Assembly (NCBI GenBank): GCA_024704765.1 | Contig: JAKMXF010000222.1 | Span: 1,178,001-1,242,000 of the forward strand | From: Oopsacas minuta | Taxonomy: Eukaryota; Animalia; Porifera | Direction of reading: 5' to 3' | DNA length: 64,000 bases | Shown here: one piece after another, positions 15,959 through 42,639 of the stretch | Layout: each line of letters begins with the position of its first letter | Position numbering within the stretch: position 1 is the first letter of the stretch | Position numbers and translations under genes: made by a program | The notes under the pieces: model-generated | Database searches by the model: none | What the model saw: the letters and a program-made list of their open reading frames with translations, nothing else | Told to the model about the DNA's origin: nothing

Positions 15959-16029
15959 TGCAATTTCTAAATTTGAAAAACACTAACTTAACCTGCATAG
16001 GACTCAGCTATGGAACACTCCTGTAAGCA

Positions 16030-17444: not shown

Positions 17445-17590
17445 TGGAGTTGATTTGGGACGAGTTGATTAGGGGCGAGTTGATTAGGGACGAGTTGATA
17501 TTAGGGACGAGTTGATGTATGACCGAAATAATAGGTACGAATTGACTAAAATAATAGGTACGAGTTGACCATGATAACAGACGACTAGAG
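17445..17590. repeat. Short degenerate tandem repeats of GGGACGAGTTGA, probably transposon subterminal repeats
   Basis: Five consecutive ~15-bp units followed by scattered ACGAGTT/ACGAATT motifs. Confidence 0.7.
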
Positions 17591-17649
17591 CCTAAAATTT
17601 GCACGAGTTCACAAAATTTTTAGAGTGGAGTTGACTGGCTCAAGAAATA

Positions 17650-19200: not shown

Positions 19201-20371
19201 TTATCAGGCTCCATAAATCAAGAAATTTTGATGGATAAAAATCAAATCCTCATATAAATAGCGTGGGTAAAACAGAGGCGTGGCCAAGGCGATGCGCTGT
19301 GGTTGAAATCATCTGAACTTGTTCGGACTTCGTTAAGCTGAAAATGGTAAAGTGGTACTGGATATTTAAATATTTTGATCTCTGAATGGTTTCAGACAGT
19401 ATTGTTTTGATTTGAGACAATTTATGATAGAACTAATGACTTTCTACTTTTTAGATTCCCTAACAAAAAATATATATATTGAGTAATACACTTCGGTCTC
19501 CACAACTTATCACACGACTGTAATCAAAGACCGTGCTACGCCACTGCTAAGATAACGAAAACATCGATTAAGTAAGGTCTTGAGCCTCGACACATTGGGC
19601 CATCCGATTAAGTATCAATGTAGGTACATTGATACTAATCGGCAAATCATCTTTTCACTCGACATATGAATAAATCAGATAATGATTATTAACAGTGCTA
19701 CTGGAAAAGACGTCCCATTGAGGAAAGAAAAGTACCGTAGGATACGCTTTATCCTAATAGAAATCGCATTAATTTAAGTAGAACTTGGATAAAAGGTACT
19801 ATATCCTTAAAAATAAAAATTCATCCCCATTCATTTAATGTTATTATGTGTATTCTTTTCAGGGGCCAGAGACCAGACCCCAACTGATTTGGGCTCCAGG
19901 CTGGATCTGAGAAATATGTGAAAATATGATTCACCACACGATTAATCACTGAGTAAAAGTTTTGAAAATGTCAAAATTGGAATCTACATACTCTCGATTA
20001 CTCATTATTAGCAGTTGAAACGAAAGATATAACATGATTTGAAATATATGCAACAAGGTGTGATAATATGATTCATCATATGAAAAATAATATAGAAATA
20101 GATTTGAAAATGTGAAATTTGACATCTACATAATCGATTACCCTAGGATAGGAGTTAAAACGTATTCTCTAGCATCATTTTCAATAGTATGCATAAGGTG
20201 TAAGTGTGAAAATATGATTAATCACATGATATATCTGTGAATTTGTTACTTCGAGCTATGAAAATCATTAAATCGGACACTATACATCCAATACCCTGAC
20301 AGCATGATATTCCAAATCTGTAGCATGCTTTTGAATTTTACATAGAAGTGTGAAATATTCACTTTAGAAAA

Positions 20372-20526
20372 TACTCATATCCGAGGTACCAATCTCAGAC
20401 CCAAAATTTATATGTATACCAATTTTCATGTTAATCGGAAGTGTAGATTTCGACTGACTGAAGGACATACGGACGTCGCACATCGTCAATGGCATTAGGG
20501 CATCTCCCTATAGGAGCTGCACTAAA
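20372..20526 (+). repeat. Short interspersed repeat end with GGAC-type microsatellite (DINE-1/Helentron-like), related to 56930-57060
   Basis: Shared CAAAAT..TATA..AATTT(T)CATG.TAATCGGA..TAGATTTCG..microsatellite..CCC.TATAGGAG at both loci. Confidence 0.4.
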
Positions 20527-20680
20527 AATGACGAAGTTATGCGTAAGATATGTTGATAGATCAAAGAGAATTGAACAAAATATTATAGACACTGAAATGT
20601 TTACTGTATGTATGTGGAAATATTTGAGATAAAATGTAAGTGAAGAATACACAAAGTACTACTGAGTATGCTAAAAAATA

Positions 20681-23600
20681 TCAGGAACTAGATAATGGAG
20701 TCTTCACAGTTTGAGCAAACACAATATTTTTAGAATGTTTTGAGCAAACAAATAATCCACATATACGACAAGATGCAGTAACCTTTAAATCAACATTTTT
20801 TCGAACACATTGGTTACATCGCCCTCTTTTACCTTTAGTTACTAGTTTCGAAATAGGTTCATTAGAATTAATTGAATCAGTGTCAGTATCAATATCAATA
20901 TCACCCTGAGAGGGATTAGCTTTTGCGATAGTCTCAACTCCAAGTACATACGATTCAGATTCTGATACATCCAATATATCAGGAGATTGTTCAGAAAAAT
21001 TTTCCGATATACTTCTATCGGTAGGGATACTTGAAGAAACTTGAGTAATAGCAGTCTTTATCACACTGTGATAGTACTTGAATTTTGATGAATTTTTTCG
21101 AATAACTATCAAAGGATTGACAAGTTGCTGACCAAGAATATAGAGAAATTCTTTCCGATTTTTTGTTTTTACCATCTTGGATTCTGGAAATTTTAGACAG
21201 TATAAAACCCATGCTGCATGTGTTGAAAACCCAATTAGGTCATAAAATACGACACAAGGCCACCTGGCTGTTGCTCGATAACTTCGATACTCCTTAATTA
21301 ATTGGTCCAGTTTATCAACCCCAGATTTTGATTTATTATAATCAAGAATAATTAAGGCTTTATTCTTATACTCCGATAGGGCTTTCGATGTATGCACATT
21401 AGTTAGCAAGAAAACATTTTTGTTTTTCTTTGCTATATAAGAAAGCAGAATGTGTTTATCTGTAAATAGAAATATTGAGGAATAGAGTTCCCTAGTCTTA
21501 GTAACATGTAAAGACCGTGGAATTTCAACTCTCATTTTCTTAATAGTCCCTAAATAACCAATTTGATGTTGTTTAAGTAGTTTATTTGTGAGGCTTAAGG
21601 AAGTGAAATAGGAATCTCCAACAATGATATGTCCCGGATTTAATACACAGGCAAGCCTAAGAACTATATCCTCTGGCTTGTTACTCAAATTAGTTTTACC
21701 TATATAAATCTCTAAAATAAGTGGATAATAATTCTTGGAATCGGCAATAACCCATATTTTAATACCATAACGATCAGGTTTGCTCGGAATGTATTGCTTG
21801 AAAGAACATTTTCCGCGATAGCGAGCCAAATGCTCATCCACTGTAACCCAAGTTCCAGGTGTATAATATTCTCTGAATAAACGATTCAAACTTTCAAACA
21901 CGTCACGAATAGGGGCTAACCTATCAGATTGTTTCCTCTCATCACGAGTTGATGCATCATCAAATCTTAGAAATTTAAGCATATGTTTCAACCGATCCCT
22001 GGGCATCGTTGCCTTAAAGATTGGTTTGGATTTATTAATATCATCAGAAAATAGATCTGCAATTGATTCCTTATTAGCATGAAAAACACCAGTTAAAATC
22101 AAGAGTCCCAACAAAGCATTTAATTCCTCTGGAATAAATGCATCAAGATATTTATGCGATTTAAGTTTGTCGCCATTTCGATCTAAATGTTCCATGAGTT
22201 TTGAGTTAGTCATTTGAAGAATAGTATCACACAACTCTCCGGTAAAAAATAACTGAAAGAAATCTAAAAGAAAAGAATCAAATAAGTATATTTCATTAAT
22301 TTACAGGTAATTAACCACTATACTCGAAGTAGAGATACACTGTAATGATTCCCATATCTTGTATTAATAGTAACCTAGCGGTAAGTTCCCTCCGTCCTAC
22401 CCTAACCTGGGCCGTCGAGAGCGCGAGCGGGCCCCCTCTGATATTTTGTTCCGTTATCGTGAAGTGAATACACCAAACGTAAACTATTGCATTCGCATTA
22501 TATATATATTAAAAAATTTAAATAAAAAAAATCCTATTTACTCATATATTTTATGAATTTTGAAATAGCCTATAGCTATATAGCTATTGAGTTTATGATG
22601 TTAAGTAGTATAAATGAAAAAATAATACTACAAAGCTAATACTTCAAGAGGTATTAAAGTTAAGAACAGAAAAATACAAAAATTTACGGTCAGTGTAATT
22701 AACAGAAAGCCTTGTGTGCCTTCTATATTTTCCCCTTTACTTGTCTACTTAATGTAGCCAATAAAGCCCATGCATACCTTAACAGAGAGAATTTCTCGGG
22801 CCCCGGGGTAATTGCCTCGCCTACCCCCCCCCTCACGACAACCCTGGCCCTAACTACATATTTTTCTTATGTAAATTCTTTGTTGATTTTTTGAATATAA
22901 AGTAAACCAATTGTTGAAATATTAAGTTATTAATTCAATTTTGCAATTGTATACATTGCTAAATTGAAGGCACAAAGTGCCAAGTCCCATGCGAACACAA
23001 AGCGTCGGAAAGCCTCGCAGCAGAGCAAGCGAAGCACCTCGTTAGTTAGATGAAAAAATCTGGACAAATTAGTTCCGGCCGGAATCATTTCGAGCTAGAA
23101 CAACAACTAACTCCAGATTTCATATTTATGAATCCGTAAAATTCACTGAGACCCTTCGAACTCCAACTGGAACTAGTTTTGATCATATCAATTTCAAATT
23201 TTCCAACTGCCTCAAAATACTATACCACAGCCCCTACATAGAGAAAGCTATGATTATATATTCCATAAAGCTACTCTAAACAATTTATCAATTTGGATTA
23301 GAAAGATACTAAACAAATTCATTCATTGCCACGTAAAATATCAAATAACACATACAGGGTTAGGCATAAGTTCTGCAACAAAATTGAAATTAAGCTAGAG
23401 GTTCTGCGAATGGTTTTAGGTGAATAATTATTTATCATATATTATCTTCAATATCTTTTTATACAATATTTAGAGTATTGAGTCCTACTAGAAAGATTTT
23501 TTTGATTTATGGACAAAGAAGCAAAACGGTCACTGATAATCTTGTATCATAATGAAGGCAAGTCAGCTTCCATAATATCAAAAATGCTGTCCATAAACAG

Positions 23601-26000
23601 ATGGATAGTCTACCGTACAATCAAACGTTACAAGGAGACTGGCAGTACCCAGGACAGGTTCAGAAAAGGTAGACCTCGTTCTATTCGTACTCCCGCTGTT
23701 AGGAAGCTCGTCCGGGAGAGGGTCAAGAAGAATCCTGTCAGAAGCATCTAAGGTATGGCAAAAGACTTCAATATTTCAACCAGAAGTATGGGGAGGATAG
23801 TAAAAGAGGATTTAGGCTTAAAATGCTACAAATTTCGAGAGGTACAGTTACTTTCTGAGGTGAATAAGAGGCGTAGGTATGAAAAATGTCTGATTCTGAG
23901 AAAAAGGTTTACTGGTGGCACGCACCAGAGTATTGTCTTCTCCGATGAGAAGATTTTTACCGTAGAGATGGCATATAGTCGCCAAAACAGTCGAATTCTT
24001 GCTCCAGATCAAAAGTCTATATCGTCATCAATACGCACAATCAAAAGAACTCAGAAACCTGCATCGGTCATGGTTTGGGGAGCTATTACCTCTGATGGTC
24101 GGACACCTCTGGTGTTCATTGACAAAGGGGTGAAAATTAACAAAGAGGTGTATGTAGAGAGCATTTTAGAGAACGCATTGAAGCCTTGGGCTGGTGAGCA
24201 CTTCAATGGCGCGCATTGGGTGTTCCAGCAAGATTCCGCTCCCTCCCATAAAGCCAAAATGATATCTGAGTGGTTGAAACTCAATGTACCGGAATTTATA
24301 TCAACTGAAGAATGGCCGGCCTCTTCTCCAGATCTAAACCCTATGGATTTCTGTATATGGTCCATCTTAGAGTCCAGGGTATGTGCAAAGCCTCACAAGA
24401 ATGTCGAAAGTCTGAAGTCTTCCTTGATAAGAGAGTGGGATTTAATTAGTGAGGACGTGTTGCGTGCTGCTGCTGATAATTTCTATAAGCGATTGAGCCT
24501 ATGTATTTCAGCAAAGGGCAATACATTCGAAGAGCAAGATTAATTTCGTATCCTTAGTATGTATATTCACTAATTCATTACGAATTTCAACAACTATTAT
24601 GGTAAGATAAGAAATATACTAGTTTATACTTGTTGCGGAACTTATGCCTAACCCTGTATAGCTCAGCTATTCTATATTCCAGCTTGTATTTTACCCAAAC
24701 TGTGCTATATATTAGCTCAGGCAGCTCAGCTGTATACGTCTCATGAATCTGTTAAAATATTCATGTACGAATCATATTTTATTAACAAAAAAGAATTTTT
24801 GAAAATGTAACCATAAGTTGATATTTTCGGGGTCATAATTTGGTGTCCAATAGAAATCGAGAAGATGTAAATGACAAGTAGGGATGGATATAATCCAAAT
24901 TCTATCAACTGTGAACTGTGCTTAAAATCTATGACAGTTTAACTATCCTAATAAGTGAAATTGGAAATGTAAAATGTTTCACATGTCATAATTCCAAATT
25001 CACTCCAACTTGTGATGAGTATTCACGTTGCAATGTTTCTCAAAGTCTATCTACACAACCATACATATAAGGTATTATAGATCTCACAATTCTAATACGT
25101 ATTCAATATCATAGAGACATAGATAGATAAAATATCATGTTGACTGATAATATATTGAGTATAAATAACGAACTTTATCTATTTCATAAAATAGCATCAC
25201 TAAAAGTATAAATATTTATTATCAACCATTAATGGAATGATATGACCAAACTAGTGTGTGAAAATATTATGTATAATACCGTGAAACAGCCACTGTTTGT
25301 TGTAACTTGTCTTACTACACGGAGTATAACAGAATTATTTGAGATTTATAGAAAAGCTTCCATGGACATAACAATATATTAGGATAGTTAAACTTTCATA
25401 AAACAGACCTATATATATAATTCTTTTTGAACAAATTTGGGAATTATTTAACTATCCCAGGAAAATACCTCAAGTAAACACTGATAGATTCCATTCTGAA
25501 AAGAAAAAGTAAAACGAACAACTATTTGTGTATTGCAAATTAGCACACGGAGAGTGTCAAGCATAATCAAAACATTGAAAATGCATTACATGTCCGTTGA
25601 TATCCATACGGCATGGCATCTCCTATAAAGCTTCGCAAAAAATTTGCCAAAAATACAATTTACCTAAAGGAGTTTTACAACCACTGCATTTGTCAGCATC
25701 TATCTTAGGTTCAAAGTTCTGAAAGATGGCAAAGTCATCAATATCGAATTTTTCATACCATTTAGTTTTTTTATCACCTGAAATCCAATAATTAGCTTCA
25801 GGGATATCCATAAATGAACCAGTCGATCCTGTATCCGACCCAGAAGTCGCTAGAGAATCTTCGTCCGACGAGACAGAAGAGTTAGAATAAGTGTCGTCTA
25901 AGTCAATATTCTCCAAATTTATTGAGTCTTCATCTGAATCATATTCATAAATACTCGTATCAGAGAACCGCTGAGGAGTTTTGGGAATTTTAAATGTCAT
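20681..26000 (-). CDS. Two-exon piggyBac transposase (PGBD4-like), ~639 aa: exon 1 26000-25664, exon 2 22263-20681
   Basis: Phase-1 donor TTAG/GTAAAT at 25664/25663 and acceptor CTTTTAG/AT at 22264/22263 rebuild KTPL-D-FFQLFFT. Acidic N-terminus, VDE / GDSYF / GVDKLDQ triad, RRWP-like ARWP motif, C-terminal Cys-rich domain. Confidence 0.82.
23355..24656 (+). mobile_element. maT-type (DD37D) Tc1/mariner element inside the piggyBac intron; transposase 23509-24543 with one stop
   Basis: TIRs CAGGGTTAGGCATAAGTTC(T/C)GCAACA with TA flanks. FSDEK, QQDSAPSH, WPASSPDLNPMD (37 residues counted). TAA at 23749. Confidence 0.92.
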
Positions 26001-26204
26001 TAAGAAAATTATGGTCACTAAGTTGGAATAAACCGTTAAACAATAGGTACTTCTAGTGCTGTATATAATATGGATTCATTGAATATCTAAATTTAAGGGT
26101 AGCTTTAAAATTATTTCTATTATATTTATGTATAAAATATTTTCATATTAATCATGGATAATTTAAAAGACATGTATTTGCCCGAATACGAGTATATGTA
26201 TGAC

Positions 26205-26800
26205 CTTTGAATGATCGTAGACGAGACGTGGGTATACTATTCAACACCATATAGCAAGTATACGAAGCGATCATGGGTGAGGGGCGACGAACAACCGGCG
26301 AAAATTCCTAGGCTCGACTTCAGAAGATCTAAGATTATGTATACCATCTTCTTCAGTAGTCATGGAATTGTCTTGCAATTACCTTGTGAGAGTCGCAAAG
26401 CTGTTACTGCTACTTTCTTTACATAGCAAGGGCTTCCAAACTTGATAAAAAATATAGAAAAGCACCCCCCGAAAACCGGAACTCGAGGAATGAAGATTTT
26501 AATTGATAACGCCAGTTCCCATACAGCTAACCTTACCAAAAATTTCTTGGATGTAGAAGGGTTAGAATTACTTCCCATCCACCATACTCACCAGACCTAG
26601 CTCCTTGTGATTTTTGGCTATTCCTCAAGCTTAAAATCTACCTTCAAGGCAAAGATTTTAACACATTACAAGCACTCGGAACGGGCCTGTACCAGTACTT
26701 CAAATCCATCCCCGAAGAAGAGTACAAAAATGCGTTTTACAAGTGGGTGGAAAGGTTAAAACTTTGTATCTGCAGGAGGCGATTACTTTGAATAAATAAT
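26205..26800 (+). pseudogene. mariner DD34D transposase, 3' half fragment
   Basis: VDETWVYY, IDNASSH, HPPYSPDLAPCDFWLF; stop and frameshift; no TIR recognised. Confidence 0.8.
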
Positions 26801-26849
26801 ATAGTGAATTAGTGTGTATAGTGTTTGTATCATATTCTATGATATCACC

Positions 26850-27299
26850 CGCAAGACTTATTGAACGCCCTAGTCGGCGGCCTTTTAAGCTAGTTCCTGT
26901 GGAAGGCTTTGTGAAGGGCAGTGGAATAATGAGGAGAAAGTTGGGGATCACTTTCTCCGCATTACTCCACGGGATCAATAAATTGTGAATAGTAACTATT
27001 GTAATTGTTAAAATCTGATTGAACCAAATCCCAGACTTTTCATAATATACGAAGGAAGGAACCTGATTGGCCAACGTTGACCAATCAGATTCCTCCGAAA
27101 ATGCATTGATATATATGGGCGAGGTGTGAAAAATTCACATATCTTGTTCAAAAATGGTTCGATTCGAAAAATATTTCTTATTTGGAAAGGTTGAGTACTA
27201 CTTAGTCGATACACAAAATTTGGTTCGAATCGGCCCAGGCATCTCTGAGAAAACGCGCGGACACACATACACACATACATACACTTTGTTTTATATATA
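26850..27299 (+). repeat. Short interspersed repeat (DINE-1/Helentron-like) with CATA microsatellite, cut by MITE copy 2
   Basis: Hairpin CTGATTGG..CCAATCAG, CAAAATTTGGTTCGAATCGG, then (CATA)n-CACTTTGTTTTATATATA. Confidence 0.4.
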
Positions 27300-28214
27300 C
27301 AGTCAGGGGACAAAAGTATTCGACCACACAAATATATTGTCATAAATTGTATACTCTTTCCCGCTCCTATATATTGTGTAGTCTATATTCGTAGCTGCTA
27401 TCTAGTAATTTGTATAGAATAACACATGTTTTCAAGAATTTCAAAAAAATATTTTAGATTGACACTTTTTGAAGGTGTTAATTATTAATAATTATTAGAT
27501 AATTATTGATAATCAAAATATGTGGTAATTCAAAACCTATTAAGAATCTATAATTTCTGACTTGATATTTGAATTCTACGTAGGCGAGTTACCCCAGATT
27601 GAAATTTCCAATCGGATTGAACAATTTTACCAGAGTTATAAAAGAATTTCAATTTGTCCCACTTGTGCCACTTTTTGAAAAAGTGGCACAGGTGGCAGGA
27701 AAAAGCGCCACTACAAGGAAATCAACTAGGGTTAGGAGGAATAAGTCGAAGTAATATTTTCGAATGATATGACTATGCTAACCCTTGAATTCCAAAATAA
27801 CCTCTTGGTAGCGGCCACTTGTGCCACCTAGGGCAAAAGGTGGCACAAATGGCACAAAATTGAAATTCATCTATAACTCTGGTAAAAATTGTTCAATCCG
27901 ATTGGAAATTTCAATCTGGGGTATCTCGCCTACGTAGAATTCAAATATCAAGTCAGAAATTATAGATTCTTAATAGGTTTTGAATTACCACATATTTTGA
28001 TTATCAATAATTATCTAATAATTATTAATAATTAACACCTTCAAAAAGTGTCAATCTAAAATATTTTTTTGAAATTCTTGAAAAACATGTGTTATTCTAT
28101 ACAAATTACTAGATAGCAGCTACGAATATAGACTACACAATATATAGGAGCGGGAAAGAGTATACAATTTATGACAATATATTTGTGTGGTCGAATACTT
28201 TTGTCCCCTGACTG
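27300..28214. mobile_element. Palindromic Tc1-like MITE, copy 2 (915 bp)
   Basis: Nearly identical to copy 1, same spacer orientation, TA flanks. Confidence 0.93.
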
Positions 28215-28778
28215 TATTTTGTAATATCTACTATACAAAAGTAGCAGTCATCATGGTGGTTAACTGGTTCTCTTCAAATTCGAGGTATTGCAAATGGCAT
28301 ACACTTTCGGGTTCCACGTAGCCATCCTTCTAAGGTGGAACCACATGATCCACAGCAGAAGTGAGGAGACCACATTTTGTCAGGATCACCCATTGGCATG
28401 CCAAAATAGGCATAATAAGCAATACACAATTTTGTACCGGGTGTTATATTATGCTTGACTTGTCTGGGTCCAATGTAGTACCCGCAAACATGGCAAAACG
28501 AATCTGGTGACAGCTTGCAAATTCTTCTGGCAGCCATCAACAAATGCTATCTGTGGACAACAATTTATCTAAGTAAATCAAAATTTGAAATGAATATAAT
28601 GTCATGCCAATGTATAATTAATGGGTAATATGAAGCGAAAATCAAAAAAGTAGAATTTCGACATTTTCACTAAATTATTGACGATACATTAAAAGCACAG
28701 TCAAATTCGAATTCCTCACGTCAGAATTGTCTAAAAAACAAGGAAATAACCAAATAAACAAAAAGTTGTTACACTGTG
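28215..28778 (-). mobile_element. Chapaev3-like element, 5' portion with its terminus
   Basis: Terminus CACAGTGTAACAAC (minus) next to TTA. CKLSPDSFCHVCG..PHFCCGSC..MPFAIPRI*REPVNHHDDCYFCIVDITK ends at the TA of MITE copy 2. Confidence 0.78.
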
Positions 28779-28870
28779 TTAGTAGCTTGTGGTGGAGAAC
28801 AAGTTCCAAACTGGACTAGAGAAGATCTACTCAACTTTACAGAAGCCAAAAATGGTTATGACAAGATGAG
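28779..28870 (+). pseudogene. Truncated exon of a HECT E3 ligase (HECTD1/TRIP12-like)
   Basis: LVACGGEQVPNWTREDLLNFTEAKNGYDKM followed by a GAG/GTAAC donor; 5' side cut by the Chapaev terminus. Confidence 0.5.
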
Positions 28871-31221
28871 GTAACTTTTGTAATTTTCGCGATACTAAAT
28901 TTCGAAATTTGCTACTTTTTGTAGAATATTGATTGCGTAATAATTCCCTAAAAATAAAATATTTGATGAAACTTATGACGTCAGACAATTTAGTAGTACT
29001 TGGATTTCAATTCAACCATCTAATATAACAATAAAGCATGGAAATTTTCGAAAATCCAAAAGGGTGACAATACGTCGTGAATCCATGGGGATTACAAGTG
29101 TCAATGATCTTACAATACTTGCATTTTCCGAGCCAGGCCATAAGTCATCTCTGAGACTAGCTTCTTCAATCTCTATATGTGTATATATATTGTTTTTAGT
29201 GGAGTTCGCCTAGCAGCAAGTCGTATTTTTGCACGCGAACTTTGCTACTAGGGAGCTATGTCTTTATAATAAAAATTAACTCCTTGGAAAAATGGCTAGT
29301 TAGACGAACATTAATTGTTGAATATTTAGATATCTTTTCTTATAATTTCAGCACAGCATATTTGATGTTTACTGAGGTTGCTACAAATTTCACCACCATC
29401 AGAAAAGAAAGTAAGTTGTTCCTTCATATTGTGGCATAATACTACACTTTTCTTTCTGCAGAAATTTTCTTTGATCCATTATCGTTTGCGGAAATACTGT
29501 TTATCAAAGTCATTGTGATGTGAATGTGAAGTGTAACTGTGTAATAGAGCTTATATCACTAACCTCTAACACTTAAAAATAGCACAACAACAGATTAAAG
29601 AGTCTTTGATGAAAAGCATTTATTAGTAATCGTTCTTCGAGGCTTTGATTTTGAGTTTCTTAACTTTGATTGATGAATACAAATTTTAAATATTTGAATA
29701 TTGTTTTAAGTATTTGAATACCCGAAATCAGTACTATACCATTGTTTTGCTGTACAGTAGAACTCAGATGAGACGTCTCGGTTAATACTTACTATTTCTT
29801 TCTTCCCAAAAAATATTTCCTATTCATTTCTATACAATATCTATCCGAATAAGACGTACTCTCGAATAATACGTACTGATTTATATTACCCCAATGCGTT
29901 CGATTCATCTTATCCGANGTATTTTAGTAATTTTTATGGCAAACAAATAAAAAAATACTAAACCCAACAAACCAAAAATTGCTAATTAGAATATTAATAA
30001 AAATATATTATATTCATGCCATAACAACGAGTCATACCTTCAGGAATGTAGGGTCGTATTGCACCATCGATTCTTGTTGACCCAACAGGAGCACTAAAGT
30101 CGTTTTTTGGAGGATATGAAATGTTCCGAGTGAGTAGATGGGGAGGAAATGTGTAGTCTAAATTTGCTCTCTTAACTGATCGCCTATATAATAGATAATT
30201 TGATTAAAGCATGCTTCCCTCACCCTTATAGTAGTAGGTGTTATTATACGTAGTAAATTGTCTAAATGGCATCCAATAAAATCCACAAGAATATATATGT
30301 ACATGTATAGAGCACGAACAGGATCCAAAGAACTGTTCAGTGAATTGGACCCATCGGCCACCATACATGTCTCATACGATCATCTTTCGCTAATTCTGAA
30401 TCAAATTTATCCCCATACATGTAGCACTCATATCATACCTCTGTAATGATGTAACTTTCTCCTCCTTCTCAGAAGGAGATTGTCAGATCCGATCAAATTT
30501 TGGTTTCAAGTCAGCATGCTGACCCTCAATAACTCTCCTGATTTTCTCCTTGGCTAGAAGAACCTCTTGGTTATTCGAGCTCTCAGGCATATTTCCATTA
30601 GAATATGCTGGAAGTTGACTCATATGTAAACGATAATAGTTTGAGAAATCAGTATATTTAGGTTATTCTCATTCTAAAACAAGAGTTATACAATTTCATC
30701 TATGATAAATAGGAATTAATAATCAAATAGATATTAAACAATTTGGAAATTCCTCCAAGACTATAATCAGTGAATGAATTGTTGATGGATTAGGAGTATA
30801 ATGTCAGTTCATTAACATCATTACTTGCATAATTAAGCCACTGTTATACAAGTTTGTTGCGTGACGTTTAAGTGGTCAACTGTGGCCGACACAATGAATA
30901 TTGGAGTCAGAAAGTGTGAAAATTCTATGTATAAATGAATGATTAAGTCTTTTTCTACGCTATCGACAGCACCAATTGAGTTAATAGTGTCGTAATAACA
31001 AATTTTCAATATTCGTCTACTAGCCAAATTACGTGTGTTAAATAAATGATATTGACTACCTCTAGTTGTAAGAGTATTGAATTCTTGCAGTCTAGCATTA
31101 TAAGATATAAAGAACATAATTATGGGAATAGATGTTATAACAATATTACATAATAATAGCAATAAGTCTCTAGTGATAAATACTAACTAGCAAGTTAACT
31201 CTATAACTAAAGGGGAAATAC

Positions 31222-32682
31222 TTGAAGAGCACAGCTCCAGATGAGTCAGTCACCGGTCCCTTTCTTCTAGAAAAGTCGATATGCAACGCGGAGAAACTGA
31301 AAGTACGAAATGTGCCTGGCTACCTCGAACCTGTGTTCCTTGATCTGCACTGGATAGATCAATGGAAGAAGCGCCATAACATCACCAGCCGTCAAATCTC
31401 GGGTGAGAGCCAATCAGCAGATCACGCTGGTGCTGACAACTGGATATCAACGCAGCTGAAACTGATCAGAGAAGAGTTTGAAGACAAGGATGTTTTCAAT
31501 GCTGATGAGACTGGGCTATTCTGGAAGATGACACCAGACAGAACTTTGTCTTTCCGAGGAGACTTGTGCAAAGGAGGCAAGCGCTCCAAGGAACGCCTCA
31601 CTGTATTGGTAGCAGCTAGTGCGGTTGGGGAGAGCTTTCCACTACTCGTTATTGGAAAGAGTAAGCGCCCCCACTGTTTCCGAGGCGTCCTGAATCTTCC
31701 AGTGGAGTATGATGCCAATCGAACCGCATGGATGACAAGTGAGATTTTGGAGAAATGGCTAAGGAAGTTGAACAATTCTATGAGATTTGATGACAGGAAA
31801 ATCGCCATGATTCTTGACAACTTCTCAGGTCATCCGAACCTTAACTTGTCCCATATCAAGCTTTTCTTTCTCCCACCCAACACAACGTCTATGACTCAGC
31901 CCATGGACGCAGGTATAATCAAGAACCTCAAGCACCACTACCGCCGGTTTCTTGTTAGGAAGCGTTTATTGGCAGTTGATTCTGAAACGGGGTTCAAGCT
32001 TGACTTGCTCCAGGCCTTGGACTGGCTAAAAATGTCCTGGGATATGTCACCCCCACAACCATCAAGCATTGCTATCAGCATGTTGGGTTCAAGGATTTAC
32101 CTGCCACTGAAGAAACCTCAGCACCTGACACATCAATTTGGAGCAGTGCTGAAGAAGCAGGGCTTGTTTCGGATGGCTTATCATTTGAGGACTTTGTTGC
32201 TCTGGATGATGGTGCTGCAATTGGACCTGGTGCAAATGGTCTCGAGATTGACGATATCCTTAATAGTCTGCACCCTCCAAGTGATGACGATGTTGATATC
32301 GAAAATGACTACAATGAATATCCCCTCAATATCCATGTTCCGTCATTCGACACTGTTGTCTCATGCCTTGACACCGTTATGAAGTTCTTGCGCACCCTCC
32401 CATGCTCAGAGAAACAGATTCAGTCTGTCAGCGAACTTCAAAACTTCTTGGCTGAAAGTCAGCTGAGTTGATTGCAGCAGGCCTCAATAACTTGCTTTTT
32501 CAAGTCAAACTAATCATATTCATGACATTATTATGACGATAATACAACAACATAGCATACTACATCGTATAACACGAATAAATTTGGGAGTCATCCGGTA
32601 GATAATGCATATATAAAGCTTCCTCGGATATAGCGACCTTTTTTGCTGCCCAAACGAGTGTCGTTAAATCCAATGTCTACTG
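31222..32682 (+). mobile_element. pogo/Tigger (TIGD-like) element, 5'-truncated, frameshifted near 32045
   Basis: FNADETGLFW, SKERLTV, AWMT, LDNFSGH, FLPPNTTSMTQPMD. The right end reads CAGTAGAC on the minus strand, followed by TA. Confidence 0.85.
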
Positions 32683-32686
32683 TATA

Positions 32687-33480
32687 TCAAATTTTCTTCA
32701 CCTCTTTTATGAAATCACAAATTTTTAATAATTTTCGATTACCCGTTAATAATATATTGGTCGGTTTGATATCTCTATGTACACAATTCTGTGAGTGTAG
32801 ATACTTTAGACCTTTATAAAACTGGATGACGTAATCGTCTACAATTGAGATATCTTCGTCGGTTAGTTTGCATATTTCTGTCGAGACTTCATTTCGTTCT
32901 CTAAGCCATTCTTGTAAATTTGTTTCACAGAGTTCAAGCTGTATACACATCATAGGGTGTAATACAGGCTGGAGAGGAGGAGCAGGAATTAGTGGTTGGG
33001 GGTTTGAATCTTCTGCTTGAATACGAGGTTCAGGTTGTTGACGGGTTGGTACGTGTTGCCGACGATCAAGTGAAATTTCTTTTCTGAAACCTGGCAATAG
33101 TTGGGGAAGATAAAGAACATCAGGATCAGAGCTAAAATCAAATTTTTGACGCTTTGCTCCCAGATTAGACCTTTTAGATACTGAAGAGGCAGATTCGGTC
33201 TCACCAGCAGTGCTTTCGATTTCGCTAGTACCATTTCCAGCATCCTCTCTTTTATCAATTTCGTAATCTAACCAGACACAATAGTATCTAATCACATTTT
33301 CATGACTCAACTTGGCTAACAACTGCACTTCTCTCACAAATTCGTGTGGATTCCCCCTCAATTTAATCTTTTTAATCGCATACTCACTATTATCCAGCTT
33401 ATTTACAGCTCTCACTACCACAGCATGACCTCCTTTACCCACAGAAATTTGTCTTCCATACTCTAATTCGAGTCTTGAAG
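32687..33480 (-). pseudogene. eIF2-alpha kinase (PKR/PERK/GCN2/HRI family) catalytic-domain fragment
   Basis: SRLELEY..GKGG, YAIKKI, REVQLLAKLSHENVIRYYCVW, kinase insert, IQLELC, HRDIKPTNIL; stops just after KICDF (no DFG glycine). Confidence 0.8.
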
Positions 33481-33482
33481 TA

Positions 33483-34818
33483 CAGGGTGTTAAGAAATTG
33501 ATGTCACCTTTTTGAAATTAAATAGAGCCATAAATTAACTATTTGAATCGTGTTTTAGCTTCCAATTCTTATTCTACGTATTTGAAATAATAGAATTCCT
33601 GTAAATTCCGAAAATTATAGACACTAAAAATACTCTCTTGTTCAATTTTTCTTACTTTTCATATACAAGAAATAATCATGGTCAAAGAAGCTACTCTAGC
33701 TGTCCGTACACGTGCAGTTTGCATGATAGAAGCTGGGATTTTTATTAATAAAGTGGCCAAGGTTGTAGGAGTATCTGTCCGTACCATTCGGCGCTGGTTG
33801 CTGAGGTCCAAGTCTGGTGAACCTCTACAGAACAGGAGGGGCCGTGGAAGGAAAACGTCCGTCACGATGGTACCGAAAGTGGTCATTTCCAAGACAATCG
33901 GTAAAAAAATGAAATCCACACGAGTTATCTCCCAGAATCTCAAATCTAAAGGGTTTTCTATCTCCCACGTGACAGTACACTCGTATTTACGCAAAAATCT
34001 GAAAGTTCGACCATACAAACCCCAGGTTCAACCCAAATTGACGGAAAAACAGAGGACAGCTCGGATAAAATTCTGTAATGAAAGGAAGAATTGGTCAATT
34101 GATAGCTGGCGAAGGGTTTTATTCTCGGACGAGTCCTCCTTTGAGATATTCCACACTCCAAAGAAGCAAAACGACCGAGTTTGGGCGAAATCTAGTTCCA
34201 ATGTTCCTCCTACCGAAAAGGTCAAATTTCCTGGAAAAATCATGGTCTGGGGTGTGATGTCATACCGAGCCCTCTCACATCTCCACATTATCCCCAAAGG
34301 ACAAACTGTGACATCAGAATATTATGTGGAAGTTATATTGAAACAGTCTCTAATACCCAGCATGCTTCGAACGAGAGATTCAGGGACTATTCTGGAGAGA
34401 AAATTGTTGCTAGAAAGGTCCAAAGCAATTTTTCAACAAGATGGGGCCCAGCACATACCTCCAAAAGAAGCCAGGAATGGCTAAAAAACAATATGCCAGG
34501 GTTTTAGACCAAGGACATATGGCCTCCAAACTCACCAGACTTAAATCCTATTGAGAACCTCTGGGCTATTTTGCAAACCAAACTGGATTCAATGGAGCGA
34601 GCAACCAACCTAAAAATGTTAGAAAAGCAGCTGATTTTGGCCTGGAAGGAAATCTCACCGGAGACACTAGAGAAACTCATAGCAGGGATGCCCTCTCGCA
34701 TTAATAAATGTTTAAAATTAAATGGAGATTACATAGGAAAGTAAATAGCACACCTTTCTAGTTCGCATTATTGAAATATGCATGGTATAAAATGGGATAT
34801 CAATTTCTTAACACCCTG
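33483..34818 (+). mobile_element. Tc1-like DD37E element (1336 bp), inserted in the kinase exon
   Basis: TIRs CAGGGTGTTAAGAAATTGAT with TA flanks. FSDES, QQDGA(P)AHT, WPPNSPDLNPIE. 1-bp deletion near 34450 and one TAG; 37-residue spacing after restoring the frame. Confidence 0.88.
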
Positions 34819-35723
34819 TATTGGCTAAAAATAGTCAGATTGATATAATGATTGCATGATTAGCTGTACAGATATATTGTCACATATCTCTGTATAATGA
34901 ATCCGTATTACAGACAATATCCACATCAAAATCCTAACTCCTACACAGGAGAGCATAGACAACCCCAATACCAACCATCTAATAATTTCAACTCCACCTC
35001 TCCTCAACAATATCCCTCTAATTATGCACCTGCTCATCAGTATTCCCTCCTGAGTAACCCCCCTATGGATATAGGCTATGAGTTTATGAGAGAGCTCAAA
35101 CTTTAGGACCTGGGGCCTCATTCACTAAACAACTTAAGTTTTGCTTAAGTATTCCTAAATATTCAAAACTTAATAACATACTTAGAATTTGCTTAATACT
35201 TAAGTATAATACCCCATGTGTAATTCTATATCTATTTACTCGAACAGTAGCCCGCCTCAATTTTTAGTCTACGATTTCTCGCCCTCTCAACGACAAATTT
35301 CGAATTTGATCTCTATTTGGGAAATTACATTAATCCAAGATGTCATAGCACCATGATCATATTCCTGAAATTTCTTATCAAATACCTTTCGAGCAAGGAC
35401 CGAAAGAGATGGTTGGGAAATATTTCGGGGTAGGCAAATATTCACTTACGAGCTACTTTTCGAGTAATACAGTACACCATAGATTCCTAATCCATTTAAC
35501 AATATGGTAACATGTAGTCATAATATAACACCGAAAGCCATATTAAAGAATATTGGTGAATTACTCAATAATATTTTGATAATAACTGTGTAAAATCTAA
35601 ACAAACAATTATAAGGTGATGAAAGATACTATTGATTGACACAGTAGCTGAGAAAAGTTAAGTAGTTCTAAACTATATAAATTTTCGAAAAGACTTCTAG
35701 TGTTTATAGCTTAAATTCGAAAA

Positions 35724-36463
35724 ATGGACCTTCAACAAGATAAAGCAAAAATAAGATCGAAAAATTACTCGCAGGAAGAAATCAATACATTAGTTGATTT
35801 AGTAGAAGAAAATAAATCTAGGCTATTTGCTAGCTTTAGTGCATCTCTAACATTTGAAGAAAAAGCTTCACTTTGGGATCAAATTGCAAGTGGTTTAACA
35901 AGTCAACACGGTGTGCATAGGTCTAGAGATGATGTCACAAAGAACTGGTCTAATCTTTTGTGCAAGCACAAACCTCTAATTGCAGATAAAATAAAATAAA
36001 TCAGAAAAACTGGGGATGGACCAGCTGATGCAGAGTTAACCCCATTGGAGGAAAAGATCTATAGCATAAGGGGTACAGAATGCTTCGAGGGAATTATTGG
36101 TGGAATAGACGTCTCTGCTGAGCCACAAAGTTCCCAACTATCACAGACCAAATGCCAATTAGCCCTTCAGTCCCATTGGATGGTAAAGTACCAGCAGCAG
36201 TGAGTAGGAAAAGACAACATCCACAGTTGGTAACGTCCATTGACGATGATACAAAACGTATTCTTATTTCAAAAGAGGATGAGAAGTTAGTACTTTTGAG
36301 AGAGATCAAAGAGAATTTGGTATCTATAGGGAACGTACTCCAGTTACTGCCTGAAATGGTCCAAAATCAAACAGCAATAGTTAATCTCCTGGCACAACAA
36401 TTGTTTCCATTCGTTGCTCCAAGCAGATTTCCAACGAATTTCCCCCCTAGTAATGTACCATAA
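35724..36463 (+). pseudogene. Harbinger Myb/SANT-like DNA-binding protein, with stop and frameshift
   Basis: RSKNYSQEEINTLVDLV..KASLWDQIA..RSRDDVTKNWSNL..RKTGDGP. Confidence 0.75.
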
Positions 36464-36611
36464 TCCACAATTTTTGATAAATTTAGTTTTTTGCATACTT
36501 ATATCTGTGTATTGCTAAGTTAGAAAGTAAGGCAACGGCGTCCCCCCATGTCTGTAACTGTTATTCTATAATTATATTCAAATGAAACTACACTTGCTAT
36601 AATAACTAATA

Positions 36612-37790
36612 TCAAATCTTAACATCGAGTTTAATAAAAAAAGTTGGTACTATTTCTTGTCTCATCAATACTCCATTTCCTGAAGAATGGGGAGTGTGAG
36701 TCTCATGAATTTGTTCATCCAGTGTATCGATGTCAGTATCGAGGCCATGGTTGATACAAATGTTATGCAGTACCATAGTTGCCATAATAATTTTGCAACA
36801 CTTTTCCGGACTGTAAGAAAGGAAACCTCCTGCCGCCGTATTCACTAAGCGTACTTAGTACTTAAGTACTAAGTATGTACTTAAGTATGCTTAGTGAATA
36901 CGGCCCCTGTTTTGTCCATTGAGCGCCAACAACTTTTCCAAATGCCAAAAGAACATTCGATCGTTTTTTGAACCTTTACAAAGGCTCGATTATATCTTCT
37001 TTGTCCAGGAGTGGTTGGAGATGGTATTGGAGTCATGAGATTCGGTTTTAATCCATATGCACTATCACCCAATAACCATCCATCAACTGTTGGTATAGTG
37101 CCATTTGATATTTTTTCGTTTACAGCGAATTGTCGCCAAATGAATGCATCATGTGTACTCCCGGGCCACATAACAACGGAATCTATGAAACGAAATTCAT
37201 GATCACAAATTGCTTGTATATTAATAGAATGAAACAACTTTCGATTGACATACACTTCTTCATTGAATGCAGGTGCAGTGATGGCTACATGTGAGCCATC
37301 GATACAACCGAACACAAGAGGAAATCCTCCATGTTGATGAAATGATTCTTGGATAACTCTTTGTCGACTTTCACTAGGAAATTTAATATATCTATTTGCA
37401 ATAGATGCTAAGCCATCACGCACTGCAGTGACACACCTTGATACAGATGTTTGTGAAATGCCATGAGCAGAAGCAACTACGTCTGAAATGTTCCAGTTGC
37501 TAGGAACTGTAGTGCTACTACCAATTGTGTTGTTGGAGGTATGGAATGGGAACGTGTTGTTAATCGGAATAGTGTACTCGGTATCTCATTTAGAAGTTCC
37601 ATGAAAAATTGCGAGTAATTCTGTAACGAGAAATAAATTCTCCATCAGAATATTCTTCCAGGGGATTTAGTCGATCTCTGAAAATTCTTTGACGGCGCAA
37701 GCTACTAGCAATTTCAAGATCAAGAATATGAAGCGCTATGCCATTGTTGATATCACAAAATTTCCTTGTAGAATTAGATAGGGCAACAAC
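36612..37790 (-). pseudogene. Harbinger (HARBI1-like) DDE nuclease, disrupted
   Basis: GCIDGSHV, NRKLFHSINIQAICD, WPGSTHDA, LLGDSAY, IECSFGIWK, VLHNICI; upstream HTH ALQFLATG..GISQTSVSR out of frame. Confidence 0.88.
36833..36906. mobile_element. 74-bp palindromic Harbinger-type mini-MITE
   Basis: Arms GCCGTATTCACTAAGC / GCTTAGTGAATACGGC; CTG at 36830-32 and 36907-09. Removing it restores DKTGGFLSYSP. Confidence 0.85.
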
Positions 37791-38044
37791 ACCAACAATA
37801 GCATATATAGATACGTGCATCAATGGATAATCAATATACCTAAAACGAGAAGTTTGGTAGGAAAATTGCAACAGTTTAAGGGCGAATATGTTGAATAATT
37901 TAATAGATATGTCGAGCGAGCTTGACCCCCGCGATAAAACGTGTCGCCAGGCCCAGCCCCTCCGTTCGCCAAATCCTGGCGCCGCCCCTGTCCATAACAG
38001 AACAGTAACACAAAGAATTGGAAAGTGAAAATTTGTAGAAAGAT

Positions 38045-38386
38045 GCAAAATTAAGATGCCGTTTTCTGTAGATAGATATCTAGACAACTAGGATCAAGTA
38101 AATTCCACTCTCTGAGACGAGATCTCAAAAGCTCCGCATTAGATTTTGTCAGACCTAATTCTCTAACCAAGTTTAATAGTTCTTGCTGATTAGGAAAGTG
38201 TGGTTTCCATGATAAGTCTTCGTCGAAGAAGATATAATCTTCCTCGCTAGAAGATATGTACTCAGGATCAACAGTTCCTTCTAAGAAAGGAGAAATCGGA
38301 ATTGGCAGATCTTCATTGTGCGACACTAGGGCAATAGACGATGGAATGTTCGGGTAAACAATATTTTTTCTATCTTTTCCTTTATA
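38045..38386 (-). pseudogene. Chapaev3-like transposase, middle portion
   Basis: YKGKDRKNIVYPNIPSSIALVSHNEDLPIP..FPNQQELLNLVRELGLTKSNAELLRSRLREWNLL; starts at the TA of MITE copy 3. Confidence 0.78.
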
Positions 38387-39303
38387 CAGTCAGGGGACAA
38401 AAGTATTCGACCACACAAATATATTGTCATAAATTGTATACTCTTTCCCGCTCCTATATATTGTGTAGTCTATATTCGTAGCTGCTATCTAGTAATTTGT
38501 ATAGAATAACACATGTTTTTCAAGAATTTCAAAAAAATATTTTAGATTGACACTTTTTGAAGGTGTTAATTATTAATAATTATTAGATAATTATTGATAA
38601 TCAAAATATGTGGTAATTCAAAACCTATTAAGAATCTATAATTTCTGACTTGATATTTGAATTCTACGTAGGCGAGTTACCCCAGATTGAAATTTCCAAT
38701 CGGATTGAGCAATTTTTACCAGAGTTATAGATGAATTTCAATTTTGTGCCATTTGTGTCACCTTTTGCCGAAGGTGGCACAAGTGGCCGCTACCAAGAGG
38801 TTATTTTGGAATTCAAGGGTTAGCATAGTCATATCATTCGAAAATACTACTTCGACTTATTCCTCCTAACCCTAGTTGATTTCCTTGTAGTGGCGCTTTT
38901 TCCTGCCACCTGTGCCACTTTTTGAAAAAAGTGGCACAAGTGGGACAAATTGAAATTCTTTTATAACTTTGGTAAAAATTGTTCAATCCGATTGGAAATT
39001 TCAATCTGGGGTAACTCGCCTACGTAGAATTCAAATATCAAGTCAGAAATTATAGATTCTTAATAGGTTTTGAATTACCACATATTTTGATTATCAATAA
39101 TTATCTAATGTTTGTGAATAATTAACACCTTCAAAAAGTGTAAATCGAAAATATTTTTTGAAATTCTTGAAAAACATATGTTATTCTATACAAATTACTA
39201 GATTGCAGCTACGAATATAGACTATACAGTATATAGGAGCGGGAAAGAGTATACAATTTATTACAATATAATTGTGTGGTTGAATACTTTTGTCCCTTGA
39301 CTG
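38387..39303. mobile_element. Palindromic Tc1-like MITE, copy 3 (917 bp), central spacer inverted relative to copies 1 and 2
   Basis: Same arms with TA flanks; more substitutions in the right arm. Confidence 0.93.
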
Positions 39304-39377
39304 TATATATAGATATATGTATGTATAATTCCATTAAGATTTAAAATTCGTTCGCAGCTTCATTTCCACAACACTTT

Positions 39378-41895
39378 ATGGCGGAACCTACTGATTTTGA
39401 GACATTGTCGCTAGTGACAAAAAGAAAGATGGTATGGGAAGAGATAAATATCATTACAACATTAGAAGAGGCCCCGAGAGTTAATTGAAACTCTCAAATT
39501 TATGGCAAGGAGGGTGATGAAAGCAGATTATGAGCTGTACTATTGCAAATTCAGCAGGACTACATATCCTGATTACTCAATAAAGGCCAAAATCGAAAAA
39601 TATGGTTCTGAGTACAAGGTTTACTTATTCGGTCACCACAAACATGATGAATGTAATCAAAAAGTAGAGTTGCTTAATAAAGGATTGTCTTAGGAAAAGA
39701 AGCAACTGTGTTTAGAAATACTAAAATCAAACCCCTGCACTCTACCTAGAAAGATATTTGATATTATGGTAAACCAAAGACCTGATCTGACGTTCGTACC
39801 TGACGATATTATCAAGATTCGCCATTTTAAACAAAATAACAAATCTAATATATTTGGTGTACATGTGGAAGACTCTCGTCAAGCGATGTGCAACGAAGTC
39901 TCTAAATACCAAGATCATTCACAAGTATTTGTTCGTCAAAAACCGGAAGAAATATACAATGACAAAGGGGAACTTTTCTTAACGATTCAACACATGAATA
40001 TGCTGAAAAATATGTCAGTTCTCAATAAGTTCATCAACTCTGATACAACTCATAGAATGAGTAAATCAAGATTGAACACTTTAGCATGCGGGTATGTTGT
40101 GACAATACTTTCCTGTTGATGTAGCATTTACGTGATCATGAAGTAATTTTAAACTATATTTTTCCTTTTAGCTCAGTTGACTGTCAATTAGTCTATCATC
40201 TGGGCTGTATTGTATTTGCTAGGCATGAAACAGCAAAAGAATATCTAAATATGTTCCGGTCATTAAATGAAGATATGCATAAGATGTTTCAATTTAAACG
40301 AAAAGAGACTCTTACTCGCAGCATGAATGATAATGATGATGCTATTTTCGCTGCTATAAGGGAAGAATTTACAAGTCCGCAATTGATCTTAGGAAATTGT
40401 TATTTCCATTTAGCTCACAGAAGTAAATGTTTAAAAGCTACCTGGGTTAAGAAGGATGGAATCACAAAGGCTAATCTAAAACCAATGCTTGAATACTTAC
40501 ACAGAATTCAGGTAGTGATTATCAATAATTATATTTCTAGGTGATTCATTTGGACAGCCTCCAAACTTGTTAAAATACTAGTTACACAATAATAATACTG
40601 TCTCATTATCTTTATTTAGAAATTACCAACCTACACTGGATCTACAATTGGATTGAAGTTATGGACAAATAAATATTCAAATACCTACCCGAATTCCATG
40701 AAGAGCTTCCTCTCAGAATATGGTCCCCCAAACAAAGATGGCTGGTTACGTAGTAAAGTTGGTCCCGGTATCCCAACTGATAATAATTCTCAAGAAAAAT
40801 TTTTCCACACCTTCAAGAGAACACTCATGCAAACCACACATGGTGATATATTGTATCTGAAGGAAGCGATTAAATGTATTTCATCACAAAGCAAATTGGA
40901 GTCGAGAAGTCTTCCATCACACCACTGGATCTAGATTGTGATCCTCCCAAGCATGTCCTCAGCCGTATTAGAGGATTTTTCCAAAGAGCATTTGAAAAGT
41001 TAGCTTCAAGTGAGTCTGATGGCATATTTCCAGCAGAAACATCTCCATTAGACGATTTACAAGGATTATCTTTAGAAGAATCATTGGCACAACTCCGCAG
41101 AAAGGTTAGTACATCAATAATGTGTACTCAATCCTTAATCTAACTACGAAGTTTATTCGTTGGTTCTCTTGACTATTTTAACATTCTATAGGATATACTT
41201 ATGGAAAGGTTATATCATTCAAAAAGAAAGTATTGCTACTTGCTAGAGAAGGCAATGTACCACACTCACCAGCAGAATATGCATTATATGGATGTTCACC
41301 AAATCCAGACTAGCTGGACGGAAGTTACAGCGCAACAACAGGAAGCGGATGAAGTAACTTGGAGATTGGATAGTTTACAACAAAAAATCGATTCAAGGTC
41401 TTATCCATCTAGCTACCTAATAACTTGCCAAACCCTTTTACTCTTTCAAATTCAAAACATTATATTAATCGAGTCTTTTTTGCTTTATTCCTATAGTGCT
41501 CCTGTTTCCTCTCGAAAGCAATTTGTCATCCCATGTAGAAGGTTACAACTTTTAAACTTTTCTTCGGAAGAATATATACAAGAAATTACCGACTTATTTT
41601 TGAAATATAAATCTGCGTCTCTACATGTGGATCAATATACGGATCTTGACTCCTTATTTTAGAAAGAGAAGGTTTCTATGTCATTACAGAATCCTTAGAT
41701 GAATCTTGTAGATATAAAGTTCAGTATTCCTGCACTTGTCCCAGCTATATGCACTACAAAGCATGTTCTCATGTTATCGCATATGGATTATTGAATAAGA
41801 AAATGGACGCTCACCCAAATGTAACTACTTTCGTAAAATCAGTGAAGAAAAAGCCAGGTAGGCCCAAAAGAGGGAATTGTTATTCATTCGATTAG
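39378..41895 (+). pseudogene. Multi-exon Mutator (MULE) transposase with SWIM finger, disrupted
   Basis: NSDTTHR, MNDNDDAIFAAI..GNCYFHL, TDNNSQEKF, SWIM CTCPSYMHYKACSH, KKKPGRPK. In-frame GT-AG introns 40092-40171, 40512-40619, 41105-41191. Stop at 39691 plus frameshifts. Confidence 0.75.
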
Positions 41896-42639
41896 GAGCG
41901 TTACCTTAGAGAGACACTATTAGCGAGGATTTGTTAATGTAGAAGAATATCTAGTAATTAACCATATTTTCTATTTCAGAATTACTTGCTAGTAATTATT
42001 GACTGTTTAGAATCCAACCTAGAAGTTACTAATGTAAATAATGTTTCTATACATTTTAACATTCTGGACTGAGTATATGAATCCACACTCTACAAAGGGA
42101 AATGTTGAAATGATACCAATATATAGAGCGTATAAGTTTAAACATTTGCCAAATTAATTGCTTTGTTTGCCAAAATAATTGAATCTTTAGTTCAGTTACC
42201 AAAATAATTGAATTCATTGGCCAAGTTAGTGGTACATCCGTATTGATATCGTAAACCTAAACATAGAAGTTCTGTGTTAGCAAAGTGAGGTAAGATGATT
42301 TATAGTAAAGGTAACGAATTTATATCGGGAATTCATACGTAGTAATCAAGGTTGCAACCGAATAGATCAATATTCGGTTCAACTGAATAATATTTGGCGA
42401 ATAGTTCAATATTCGGTTACTAACCGAATATTATCAGTAGATTCGGTTCGATCAGTTTCAACCTTGGTAGTAACTCCATTGATGGAGGAGATGCGAAATT
42501 CATTTGTTTGTTTGCCAGTAAACATGAAAAGTCACCTGTGTAGTTCTATTTAAATGTTGCAACTGTATTATTTTGCATTATCAGCTAAAATATTTTTGCC
42601 ATATTTTATATTCTCTTTATTAACAACTCTTCATTTATC

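Follow-up and report, generated by a model that had tools for sequence, protein, structure and literature searches.

Two junctions of one MITE insertion on separate MITE copies in the sponge Oopsacas minuta, most likely through recombination between palindromic copies

A window of 64,000 nucleotides from the glass sponge Oopsacas minuta, which is the whole stretch of DNA analysed (GenBank assembly GCA_024704765.1, contig JAKMXF010000222.1; C222:1178001-1242000 in an assembly of 61.46 Mb and 365 scaffolds), holds three copies of a 915-bp miniature inverted-repeat transposable element (MITE): M1, at 8680-9595, and M2 and M3, which enclose a cargo of other transposon sequences (Table 1). On its inner side, each of M2 and M3 adjoins one part of the same Chapaev-like element, named E-right beside M2 and E-left beside M3; the outer flanks are repeat F, to the left of M2, and repeat R, to the right of M3. 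One MITE insertion into the Chapaev-like element has its two junctions on different MITE copies, and in swapped order. Recombination between the copies is the most likely cause, and a real homologous exchange via their identical 335-bp arms is given a probability of about 0.5.

On the minus strand, the open reading frame (ORF) to the right of M2 ends at the TA in 28215-28216, where ..DCYFCIVDITK stops at 28216, and the ORF to the left of M3 begins at the TA in 38385-38386, where YKGKDRKNIVYPNIPSS takes up at 38386; this reading had been proposed in the first-pass annotation of the window and was found again when the sequence was re-read. Joined with one shared TA, 37991-38386 and 28217-28780 form a 960-bp stretch that is uninterrupted in at least 14 other copies of the element (85-96%), none of which contains a MITE, and the joined halves give one match, with no gap at the junction, to 10 other readable genomic copies (89-93%). 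Since the joined halves align unbroken in other copies, the two junctions mark opposite borders of one MITE insertion, and the halves, as judged from these alignments, come from one insertion site. Their distances from the family consensus, 3.0% and 3.7%, are the lowest among 11 copies, and such an equal and low divergence fits a single copy; the majority consensuses of the split element and of the MITE served only for counting differences.

E-right contains the terminus of the element (..ACACTGTGT on the plus strand, at 28780) and a Cys-rich N-terminal ORF; this 5′ terminus is kept in nine of 10 other copies, and the DNA beyond it is unrelated. At the opposite side, other copies run ~0.9 kb beyond the equivalent of 37991, and their extra part is 63% similar to 14239-15110; in the window, the element is cut at 37991 by a 115-bp repeat fragment, which is followed by a Harbinger-like element. 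What had been described as one gene is only a truncated 5′ fragment of a ~1.9-kb non-autonomous element. Its assignment to Chapaev3 comes from the first-pass annotation and is kept here as putative. No Pfam family was matched by the ORFs of the split fragment or of the 2.1-kb copy at 13870-15992, and, for comparison with the CAC-type termini and the target duplication of 3-4 bp of the Chapaev3/CMC superfamily, one terminus was seen, the ...ACACTGTGT at 28780. The colinearity of the halves with the copy at 15.6 kb stands for the protein, but that copy belongs to a separate family, with a DNA similarity of 63-78%. The copy at 13870-15992 is a member of its own 2.1-kb family, which counts at least 19 copies at 93-97%, and carries stops and frameshifts.

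The MITE is a nearly full palindrome. Its arms are identical for 335 bp in the consensus of 30 copies, and its orientation is therefore readable only from the central ~245 bp. The termini read CAGTCAGGGGAC..., and six terminus matches occur in the window against 0 expected by chance. Each of M1, M2 and M3 is flanked by TA; a TA is present on both sides in 29 of 30 sampled copies, mostly within TATA, the exception being one copy (L012) with TG on the right. The genome contains at least 40 full copies, at 94-100% identity, and 437 arm-level candidates, suggesting a copy number of roughly 200; no ORF lies wholly within a MITE copy. The TA duplication, the CAGT-type tips, the short non-coding body and the many near-identical copies point to a Tc1/mariner-type MITE. 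A Tc1-like element is found in the cargo, with termini unlike those of the MITE. Empty sites were reconstructed for three MITE loci. The two arms of one palindromic copy seem to evolve in concert, and in 28 other copies the median arm difference per 200 nt is 3 within a copy versus 8 between copies. A rare variant can also be seen as a mirror pair on both arms of one copy: both M2 and the copy L002 (C199:682609-683522) have 126C together with 792G, and L002 has in addition 130- together with 784-.

As reported earlier, the spacers are opposite: the centre of M3 is inverted with respect to that of M2, while M1 and M2 lie the same way round. From end to end, M2 shares 99.6% identity with L002 (C199:682609), and it carries the rare markers of that copy, which are 126C, 130-, 327- and 336G in the left arm and 792G, the mirror of 126C, in the right arm. 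When M2 and M3 are aligned in the orientation that fits best, which is the inverted one, 26 sites are different; at 16 of these the states recur in other genomic copies, so that they are lineage polymorphisms and not mutations acquired after insertion, and M2 and M3 are of different lineages. The E-side arms of M3 and M2 show no difference over 200-290 bp, 792G included, and the centre of M3 bears markers of another lineage than that of M2. The outer 195 bp of M3, next to R, concentrate 14 of the 21 departures from the consensus (Fisher p = 1e-5) and all of the private changes of this copy (8/8; Fisher p = 5e-6), and this outer arm has at most 95% identity to any other arm in the genome. M3 is a hybrid, with a young inner arm and centre on an old outer segment of ~200 bp.

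Comparison of the four arms gives a distance of 0 between the arms beside E-left and E-right, of 2 between the arm beside F and either E arm, and of 16 between the arm beside R and any other. The identity of the E-side arms, which share the rare 126C/792G, is as expected of the two arms of one original MITE. Three of the four arms are of the rare young 126C/792G type and one is old, so that one MITE is a hybrid whichever way the arms are paired. In the old arm of M3 a private change occurs about every 25 bp, and no 99-mer is common to other copies; with private changes so dense, a de Bruijn graph of k = 99 could not jump out of this arm, and by this reasoning the switch from old to young in M3 must exist in real molecules or reads. 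Gene conversion from M2 to M3 was considered and rejected, given that the centres differ at eight sites and carry other lineage markers.

The outer flanks had been regarded as one split repeat end; this did not hold, as the left one is the natural terminus of F and the right one a different, truncated repeat. At least 40 copies of F are present; their 5′ truncation varies, all end in ...CTTTGTTTTATATATA, and M2 starts exactly at this point; the terminus of F suggests a LINE-like 3′ end (LINE, long interspersed nuclear element). R begins in the window at an internal (TA)n, and the ~110-bp left terminal inverted repeat of its other copies is absent. No junction of that terminal repeat with a MITE and no empty F.R site are present in the assembly; the missing left terminal inverted repeat of R, together with the lack of any MITE junction of it in the assembly, is consistent with a real loss. 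The (TA)n of R, at 39304-39330 of the window, is a recurrent target for TA-inserting elements: another R copy (L061, C122:323850-327602) carries, in this microsatellite too, a mariner-like element, beyond which the left terminal inverted repeat of R follows.

The sequence shows that a young MITE entered, at a single TA, a Chapaev-like element that was dead and truncated; this was an ordinary nested insertion. Later, MITE copies would have swapped partners by homologous recombination, or by recombinational repair of a break, through the 335-bp arms, which may pair in either orientation; the two junctions of the one insertion would in this way have ended up on separate MITE copies. M2 is the intact young copy, with the end of F as its other flank, and M3 the recombinant, with the truncated R as its other flank. 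The variant pattern needs at least two exchanges or a non-reciprocal copying, and a single crossover or the integration of a single circle falls short of it. The geometry depends on the unfilled scaffold join at 29918, which lies within the cargo. If the join is right, the block would be a true circular permutation, formed via a circular or duplicated intermediate plus a deletion extending to an old MITE at R; if it is wrong, one reciprocal MITE-MITE crossover, either an inversion or a translocation, would explain both junctions. The halves may be ~10 kb apart in one permuted block, or may be far apart and united by the scaffolder.

The earlier statement that this order is out of reach of a simple inversion or deletion is agreed with. 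After an inversion between the MITEs, one half would read on the plus strand and the other on the minus strand, whereas both read on the minus strand; duplicative inversion, deletion plus circle, unequal sister exchange and P-type hybrid-element insertion, as reasoned from the anatomy of the locus, yield one junction per chromosome or the wrong orientation. The first-pass annotation had proposed, among other models, a circle that recombined into a resident MITE through the palindromic arms. The exchange through the arms survives as the best real mechanism, but a single circle integration does not account for the three 126C/792G arms and one old arm. It appears unlikely that a circle of ~10-11 kb with one MITE left the transposon nest and re-integrated arm-to-arm in a resident MITE, that this occurs recurrently in Oopsacas minuta and that palindromic MITEs act as landing pads.

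Another explanation is that an ~11-kb unit of MITE, E-right, cargo and E-left exists as a tandem array, as a replicative cointegrate or as an extrachromosomal circle, and that the assembler collapsed it or passed through it once. This would agree with the topology, which is that of a cycle through a shared repeat, and with the fact that the scaffolder joined the end of repeat A to the start of repeat B. Such an arrangement predicts near-identical MITEs in direct orientation; M2 and M3 instead have their 26 differences, inverted centres and other lineage markers, and no second copy of the unique parts of the unit is present in the assembly. This explanation is thus very improbable, and the earlier proposals of a composite derived from a tandem duplication and of a collapsed tandem, which share the prediction, fail on the same differences.

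Quite improbable, too, is an arrangement made by a transposase, for which two forms can be conceived. The first is alternative (reversed-ends) transposition, in which the ends that two separate MITEs turn towards each other would have been excised as a pair and inserted into a TA of the Chapaev-like element on the re-circularised inter-MITE segment; the second is a composite of the type MITE-cargo-MITE. The inner MITE ends are joined precisely to TA, and the two TAs are the duplication of one target; moreover, the MITEs are independent copies whose orientation is arbitrary, which alternative transposition permits, and both MITE ends have the same sequence, so that any two could in principle synapse. 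Transposition, however, would leave the MITEs unaltered, and M3 is hybrid. No TA-footprint-TA junction was seen in the cargo, where the A/B junction at the N is not flanked by TA, and the left terminal inverted repeat of R, which would be the expected old flank, is absent. The composite would further need a donor with two elements hit at the same TA, against 0 of at least 14 other copies of the element with a MITE, and the outer flanks represent no demonstrable single target, being different repeats without an empty F.R site.

The distance between the halves, given earlier as 10.2 kb, is correct in its coordinates, but it depends on the scaffold join between two contigs that is marked by the N at 29918. 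A lone N is what SSPACE and GapFiller write where the estimated gap is zero or negative, or where the fill was not closed. The left contig stops at this point, having entered a TA/CAGT-type repeat for ~163 bp, and a twin of its last 130 bp, 100% identical, is found at C301:11890-12019, ending at the same base; repeat B, on the other side, starts at its own terminus, without a twin like that of the end of A. Sequence is missing at 29918, and the adjacency of the contigs depends on mate pairs. A third MITE hidden in the gap was rejected, as neither the window nor C301 has a MITE tip past the end of A. Single Ns elsewhere are also located at homology breaks (L062:2182, mid-element in an R copy, and L024:3222), and the flanks of a 169-N run on C332 overlap by 30 bp. 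The gaps of this assembly are real but poorly sized joins, and this bears on every structural finding in the genome. The assembly, which is described as 365 scaffolds of ~61 Mb with 36% G+C, was produced by hybrid SPAdes 3.9 from Illumina and Canu-corrected PacBio reads, followed by SSPACE, Pilon and one GapFiller round (PMC10280926); in GapFiller, a gap is extended from each of its edges, and closure requires that the extensions overlap and that the fill agrees with the size estimated for the gap (PMC3446322).

Several points weigh against a real exchange. The pairing of flanks across the MITEs was judged from the assembled sequence, the sole N of the window falls within the cargo, and the contig to its left ends in the duplicated repeat, in an assembly made with SPAdes, SSPACE and GapFiller and having other single Ns at homology breaks. 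No one simple recombination event yields all four arms plus both centres. An assembly artefact is a serious rival explanation, though a less probable one than real exchange: the genome would contain an ordinary MITE insertion in the Chapaev-like fragment and another at a TA-rich F/R boundary, and the two would have been cross-threaded and the loop closed by the 1-N join. Under random placement, the window's single N would fall inside the cargo with a chance of 0.16. The twin on C301 of the last 130 bp before the N, the homology breaks at other single Ns, the overlapping flanks on C332, the documented pipeline (PMC10280926) and the closure conditions of GapFiller (PMC3446322) are all in line with a mis-join, and with ~200 copies of a MITE with arms identical for 335 bp, all four flank contigs end in the same arm.

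For an artefact, nevertheless, threading would have had to fail twice, in complementary ways, at MITEs that should be within the span of long reads. M2 agrees throughout with one rare lineage, and the hybrid arm of M3 cannot stem from a k-mer jump. The “natural” pairing of the flanks turns both MITEs into mosaics and still leaves R without its terminal inverted repeat. The assembled pairing needs fewer lineage switches, because M2 matches L002 in the left arm, the centre and the right arm; the count is two against three for the “natural” pairing, and is a weak argument. In the other testable MITE loci the flanks are properly paired (3/3), and fold-back flanks occur in none of 30 MITE loci. Finally, the assembly contains no alternative junction contigs, such as an empty F.R site or the left terminal repeat of R beside a MITE.

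The features of the locus are collected in Table 1. The last ~163 bp of repeat A, from ~29755, are the TA/CAGT-type start of another repeat, and a second copy of the 283-bp spacer at 34822-35104 was not found beside relatives of that repeat. The cargo had been said to include kinase and HECT fragments; the kinase fragment was recovered, and no HECT was detected in the frames tested. The kinase fragment recurs at seven or more loci, among them C302:534575, C1:103467, C363:186548, C55:79059, C302:583151 and C222:380020. Three of its copies are 99% identical and are without a stretch of ~210 bp that is present in the other four, and several are near repeat B; the fragment looks like a piece of a gene that a transposon picked up and dispersed, and its source may have been a processed copy.

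Table 1. Features of the locus, in positions of the window.
Feature	Position	Strand	Description
Segment S	16029..27299		11.3 kb; also on C332 272911-284583 at ~99.8%; right end is the left edge of M2
Repeat F	26878..27299	+	Left outer flank; LINE-like 3′ end
MITE M2	27300..28214	+	915 bp, near-palindromic; CAGTCAGGGG... termini; TA on each side
E-right, with TA	28215..28780	-	5′ part of the Chapaev-like non-autonomous element
Repeat A	28781..29917		One other copy, 91% (C111)
Single N	29918		Sole N of the window; scaffold join between two contigs
Repeat B	29919..31222		1.3 kb; at least 5 copies at 93-96%; sharp terminus at 29919
Pogo-like element (DDE_1)	31219..32712	+	Family copies 95-97% identical
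Protein-kinase fragment K	32711..33482	-	Two other copies at 99%; four with an extra ~210 bp
Tc1-like element (HTH_Tnp_Tc3_2)	33479..34821	+	Copies at 99%
Low-copy sequence	34822-35104		283 bp
Harbinger-like element (Myb_DNA-bind_5, DDE_Tnp_4)	35105..37879	-	88-93% to other copies
Repeat fragment	37876..37990		115 bp; adjoins the truncation point of the Chapaev-like element
E-left, with TA	37991..38386	-	Middle part of the same Chapaev-like element; ends abruptly at 37991
MITE M3	38387..39303	-	Centre inverted relative to M2; hybrid
Repeat R	39304..42221	+	Right outer flank; ~2.9 kb; right terminal inverted repeat at 42146-42221

To the left of M2, segment S has its left boundary in a 44-bp satellite and its right one at the 3′ terminus of F, and it includes a piggyBac region. 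In its copy on C332, which is full of gaps, unrelated DNA follows the segment and no MITE is present. This duplicate was rejected as an allelic empty site for M2: the boundary is the natural end of F, and the genic DNA to the right of the block is single-copy. Segment S may derive from a long transcript, ending in the LINE tail, that was copied in trans, or may be an assembly duplicate. The 44-bp tandem satellite occupies 16015-16495 (~11 units) and recurs around the duplicate of segment S at C332:272782, 286613 and 292018, and also at C344:1283. Elsewhere in the window, a 164-bp inverted repeat at 936-1099 and 4398-4560, with 96% identity (131 nt at 98% in a repeat scan) and arms 3.3 kb apart, probably marks the terminal repeats of another transposon.

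If the arrangement is real, it represents a clean natural case of long-armed palindromic MITEs that reshuffle DNA by recombination, not by transposition, with one recombinant MITE still legible as a hybrid, and it adds to the signs of many small repair or rearrangement scars in a compact sponge genome. If it is an artefact, it shows that swapped halves at the high-copy palindromic repeats of this assembly should not be read biologically until reads support them. With the repeat-induced mis-joins of hybrid assemblies (PMC10280926, PMC3446322) the locus has in common the swapped flanks of a high-copy repeat, an unclosed 1-N join and a contig end that is duplicated elsewhere. Unlike in a mis-join, M2 is internally coherent, the hybrid arm of M3 must be real and other MITE loci are properly paired.

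The known processes closest to a real exchange are ectopic recombination between dispersed repeats, rearrangement by foldback elements, re-integration of circular DNA and alternative transposition of Ac/Ds or P. Reversed-ends or alternative transposition is known from maize Ac/Ds, and hybrid-element insertion from P elements; as in those rearrangements, two element copies share one target-site duplication between their ends and the DNA that separates them has been rearranged, whereas in the present locus a footprint junction was not found, one of the MITEs is recombinant and no transposase source for the MITE came to light, no genome-wide search for a partner having been made. The re-integration of circular DNA is resembled by the order of flank, repeat, permuted segment, repeat and flank, with the ends of the segment being the two sides of one site. 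It would, however, predict reciprocal hybrid MITEs, and M2 is no hybrid; it would also require the extra deletion to the old MITE at R, and the sole candidate for the closure point of a circle is the scaffold gap at 29918.

Non-allelic homologous recombination between dispersed transposon copies is known for Alu-Alu pairs, Ty, IS elements and the foldback elements of Drosophila. The locus is like these cases in that two copies of one family swap flanks, the repeat-flank junctions are precise and M3 is a hybrid of two lineages. It is unlike them in that the repeat is a 915-bp near-perfect palindrome, the circular permutation, as scaffolded, goes beyond a single event of this recombination and the reciprocal product was not seen. 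Nothing here falls outside known processes, and the event is of a known kind; its useful particulars are a hybrid MITE that can be read and arms that are able to pair either way round.

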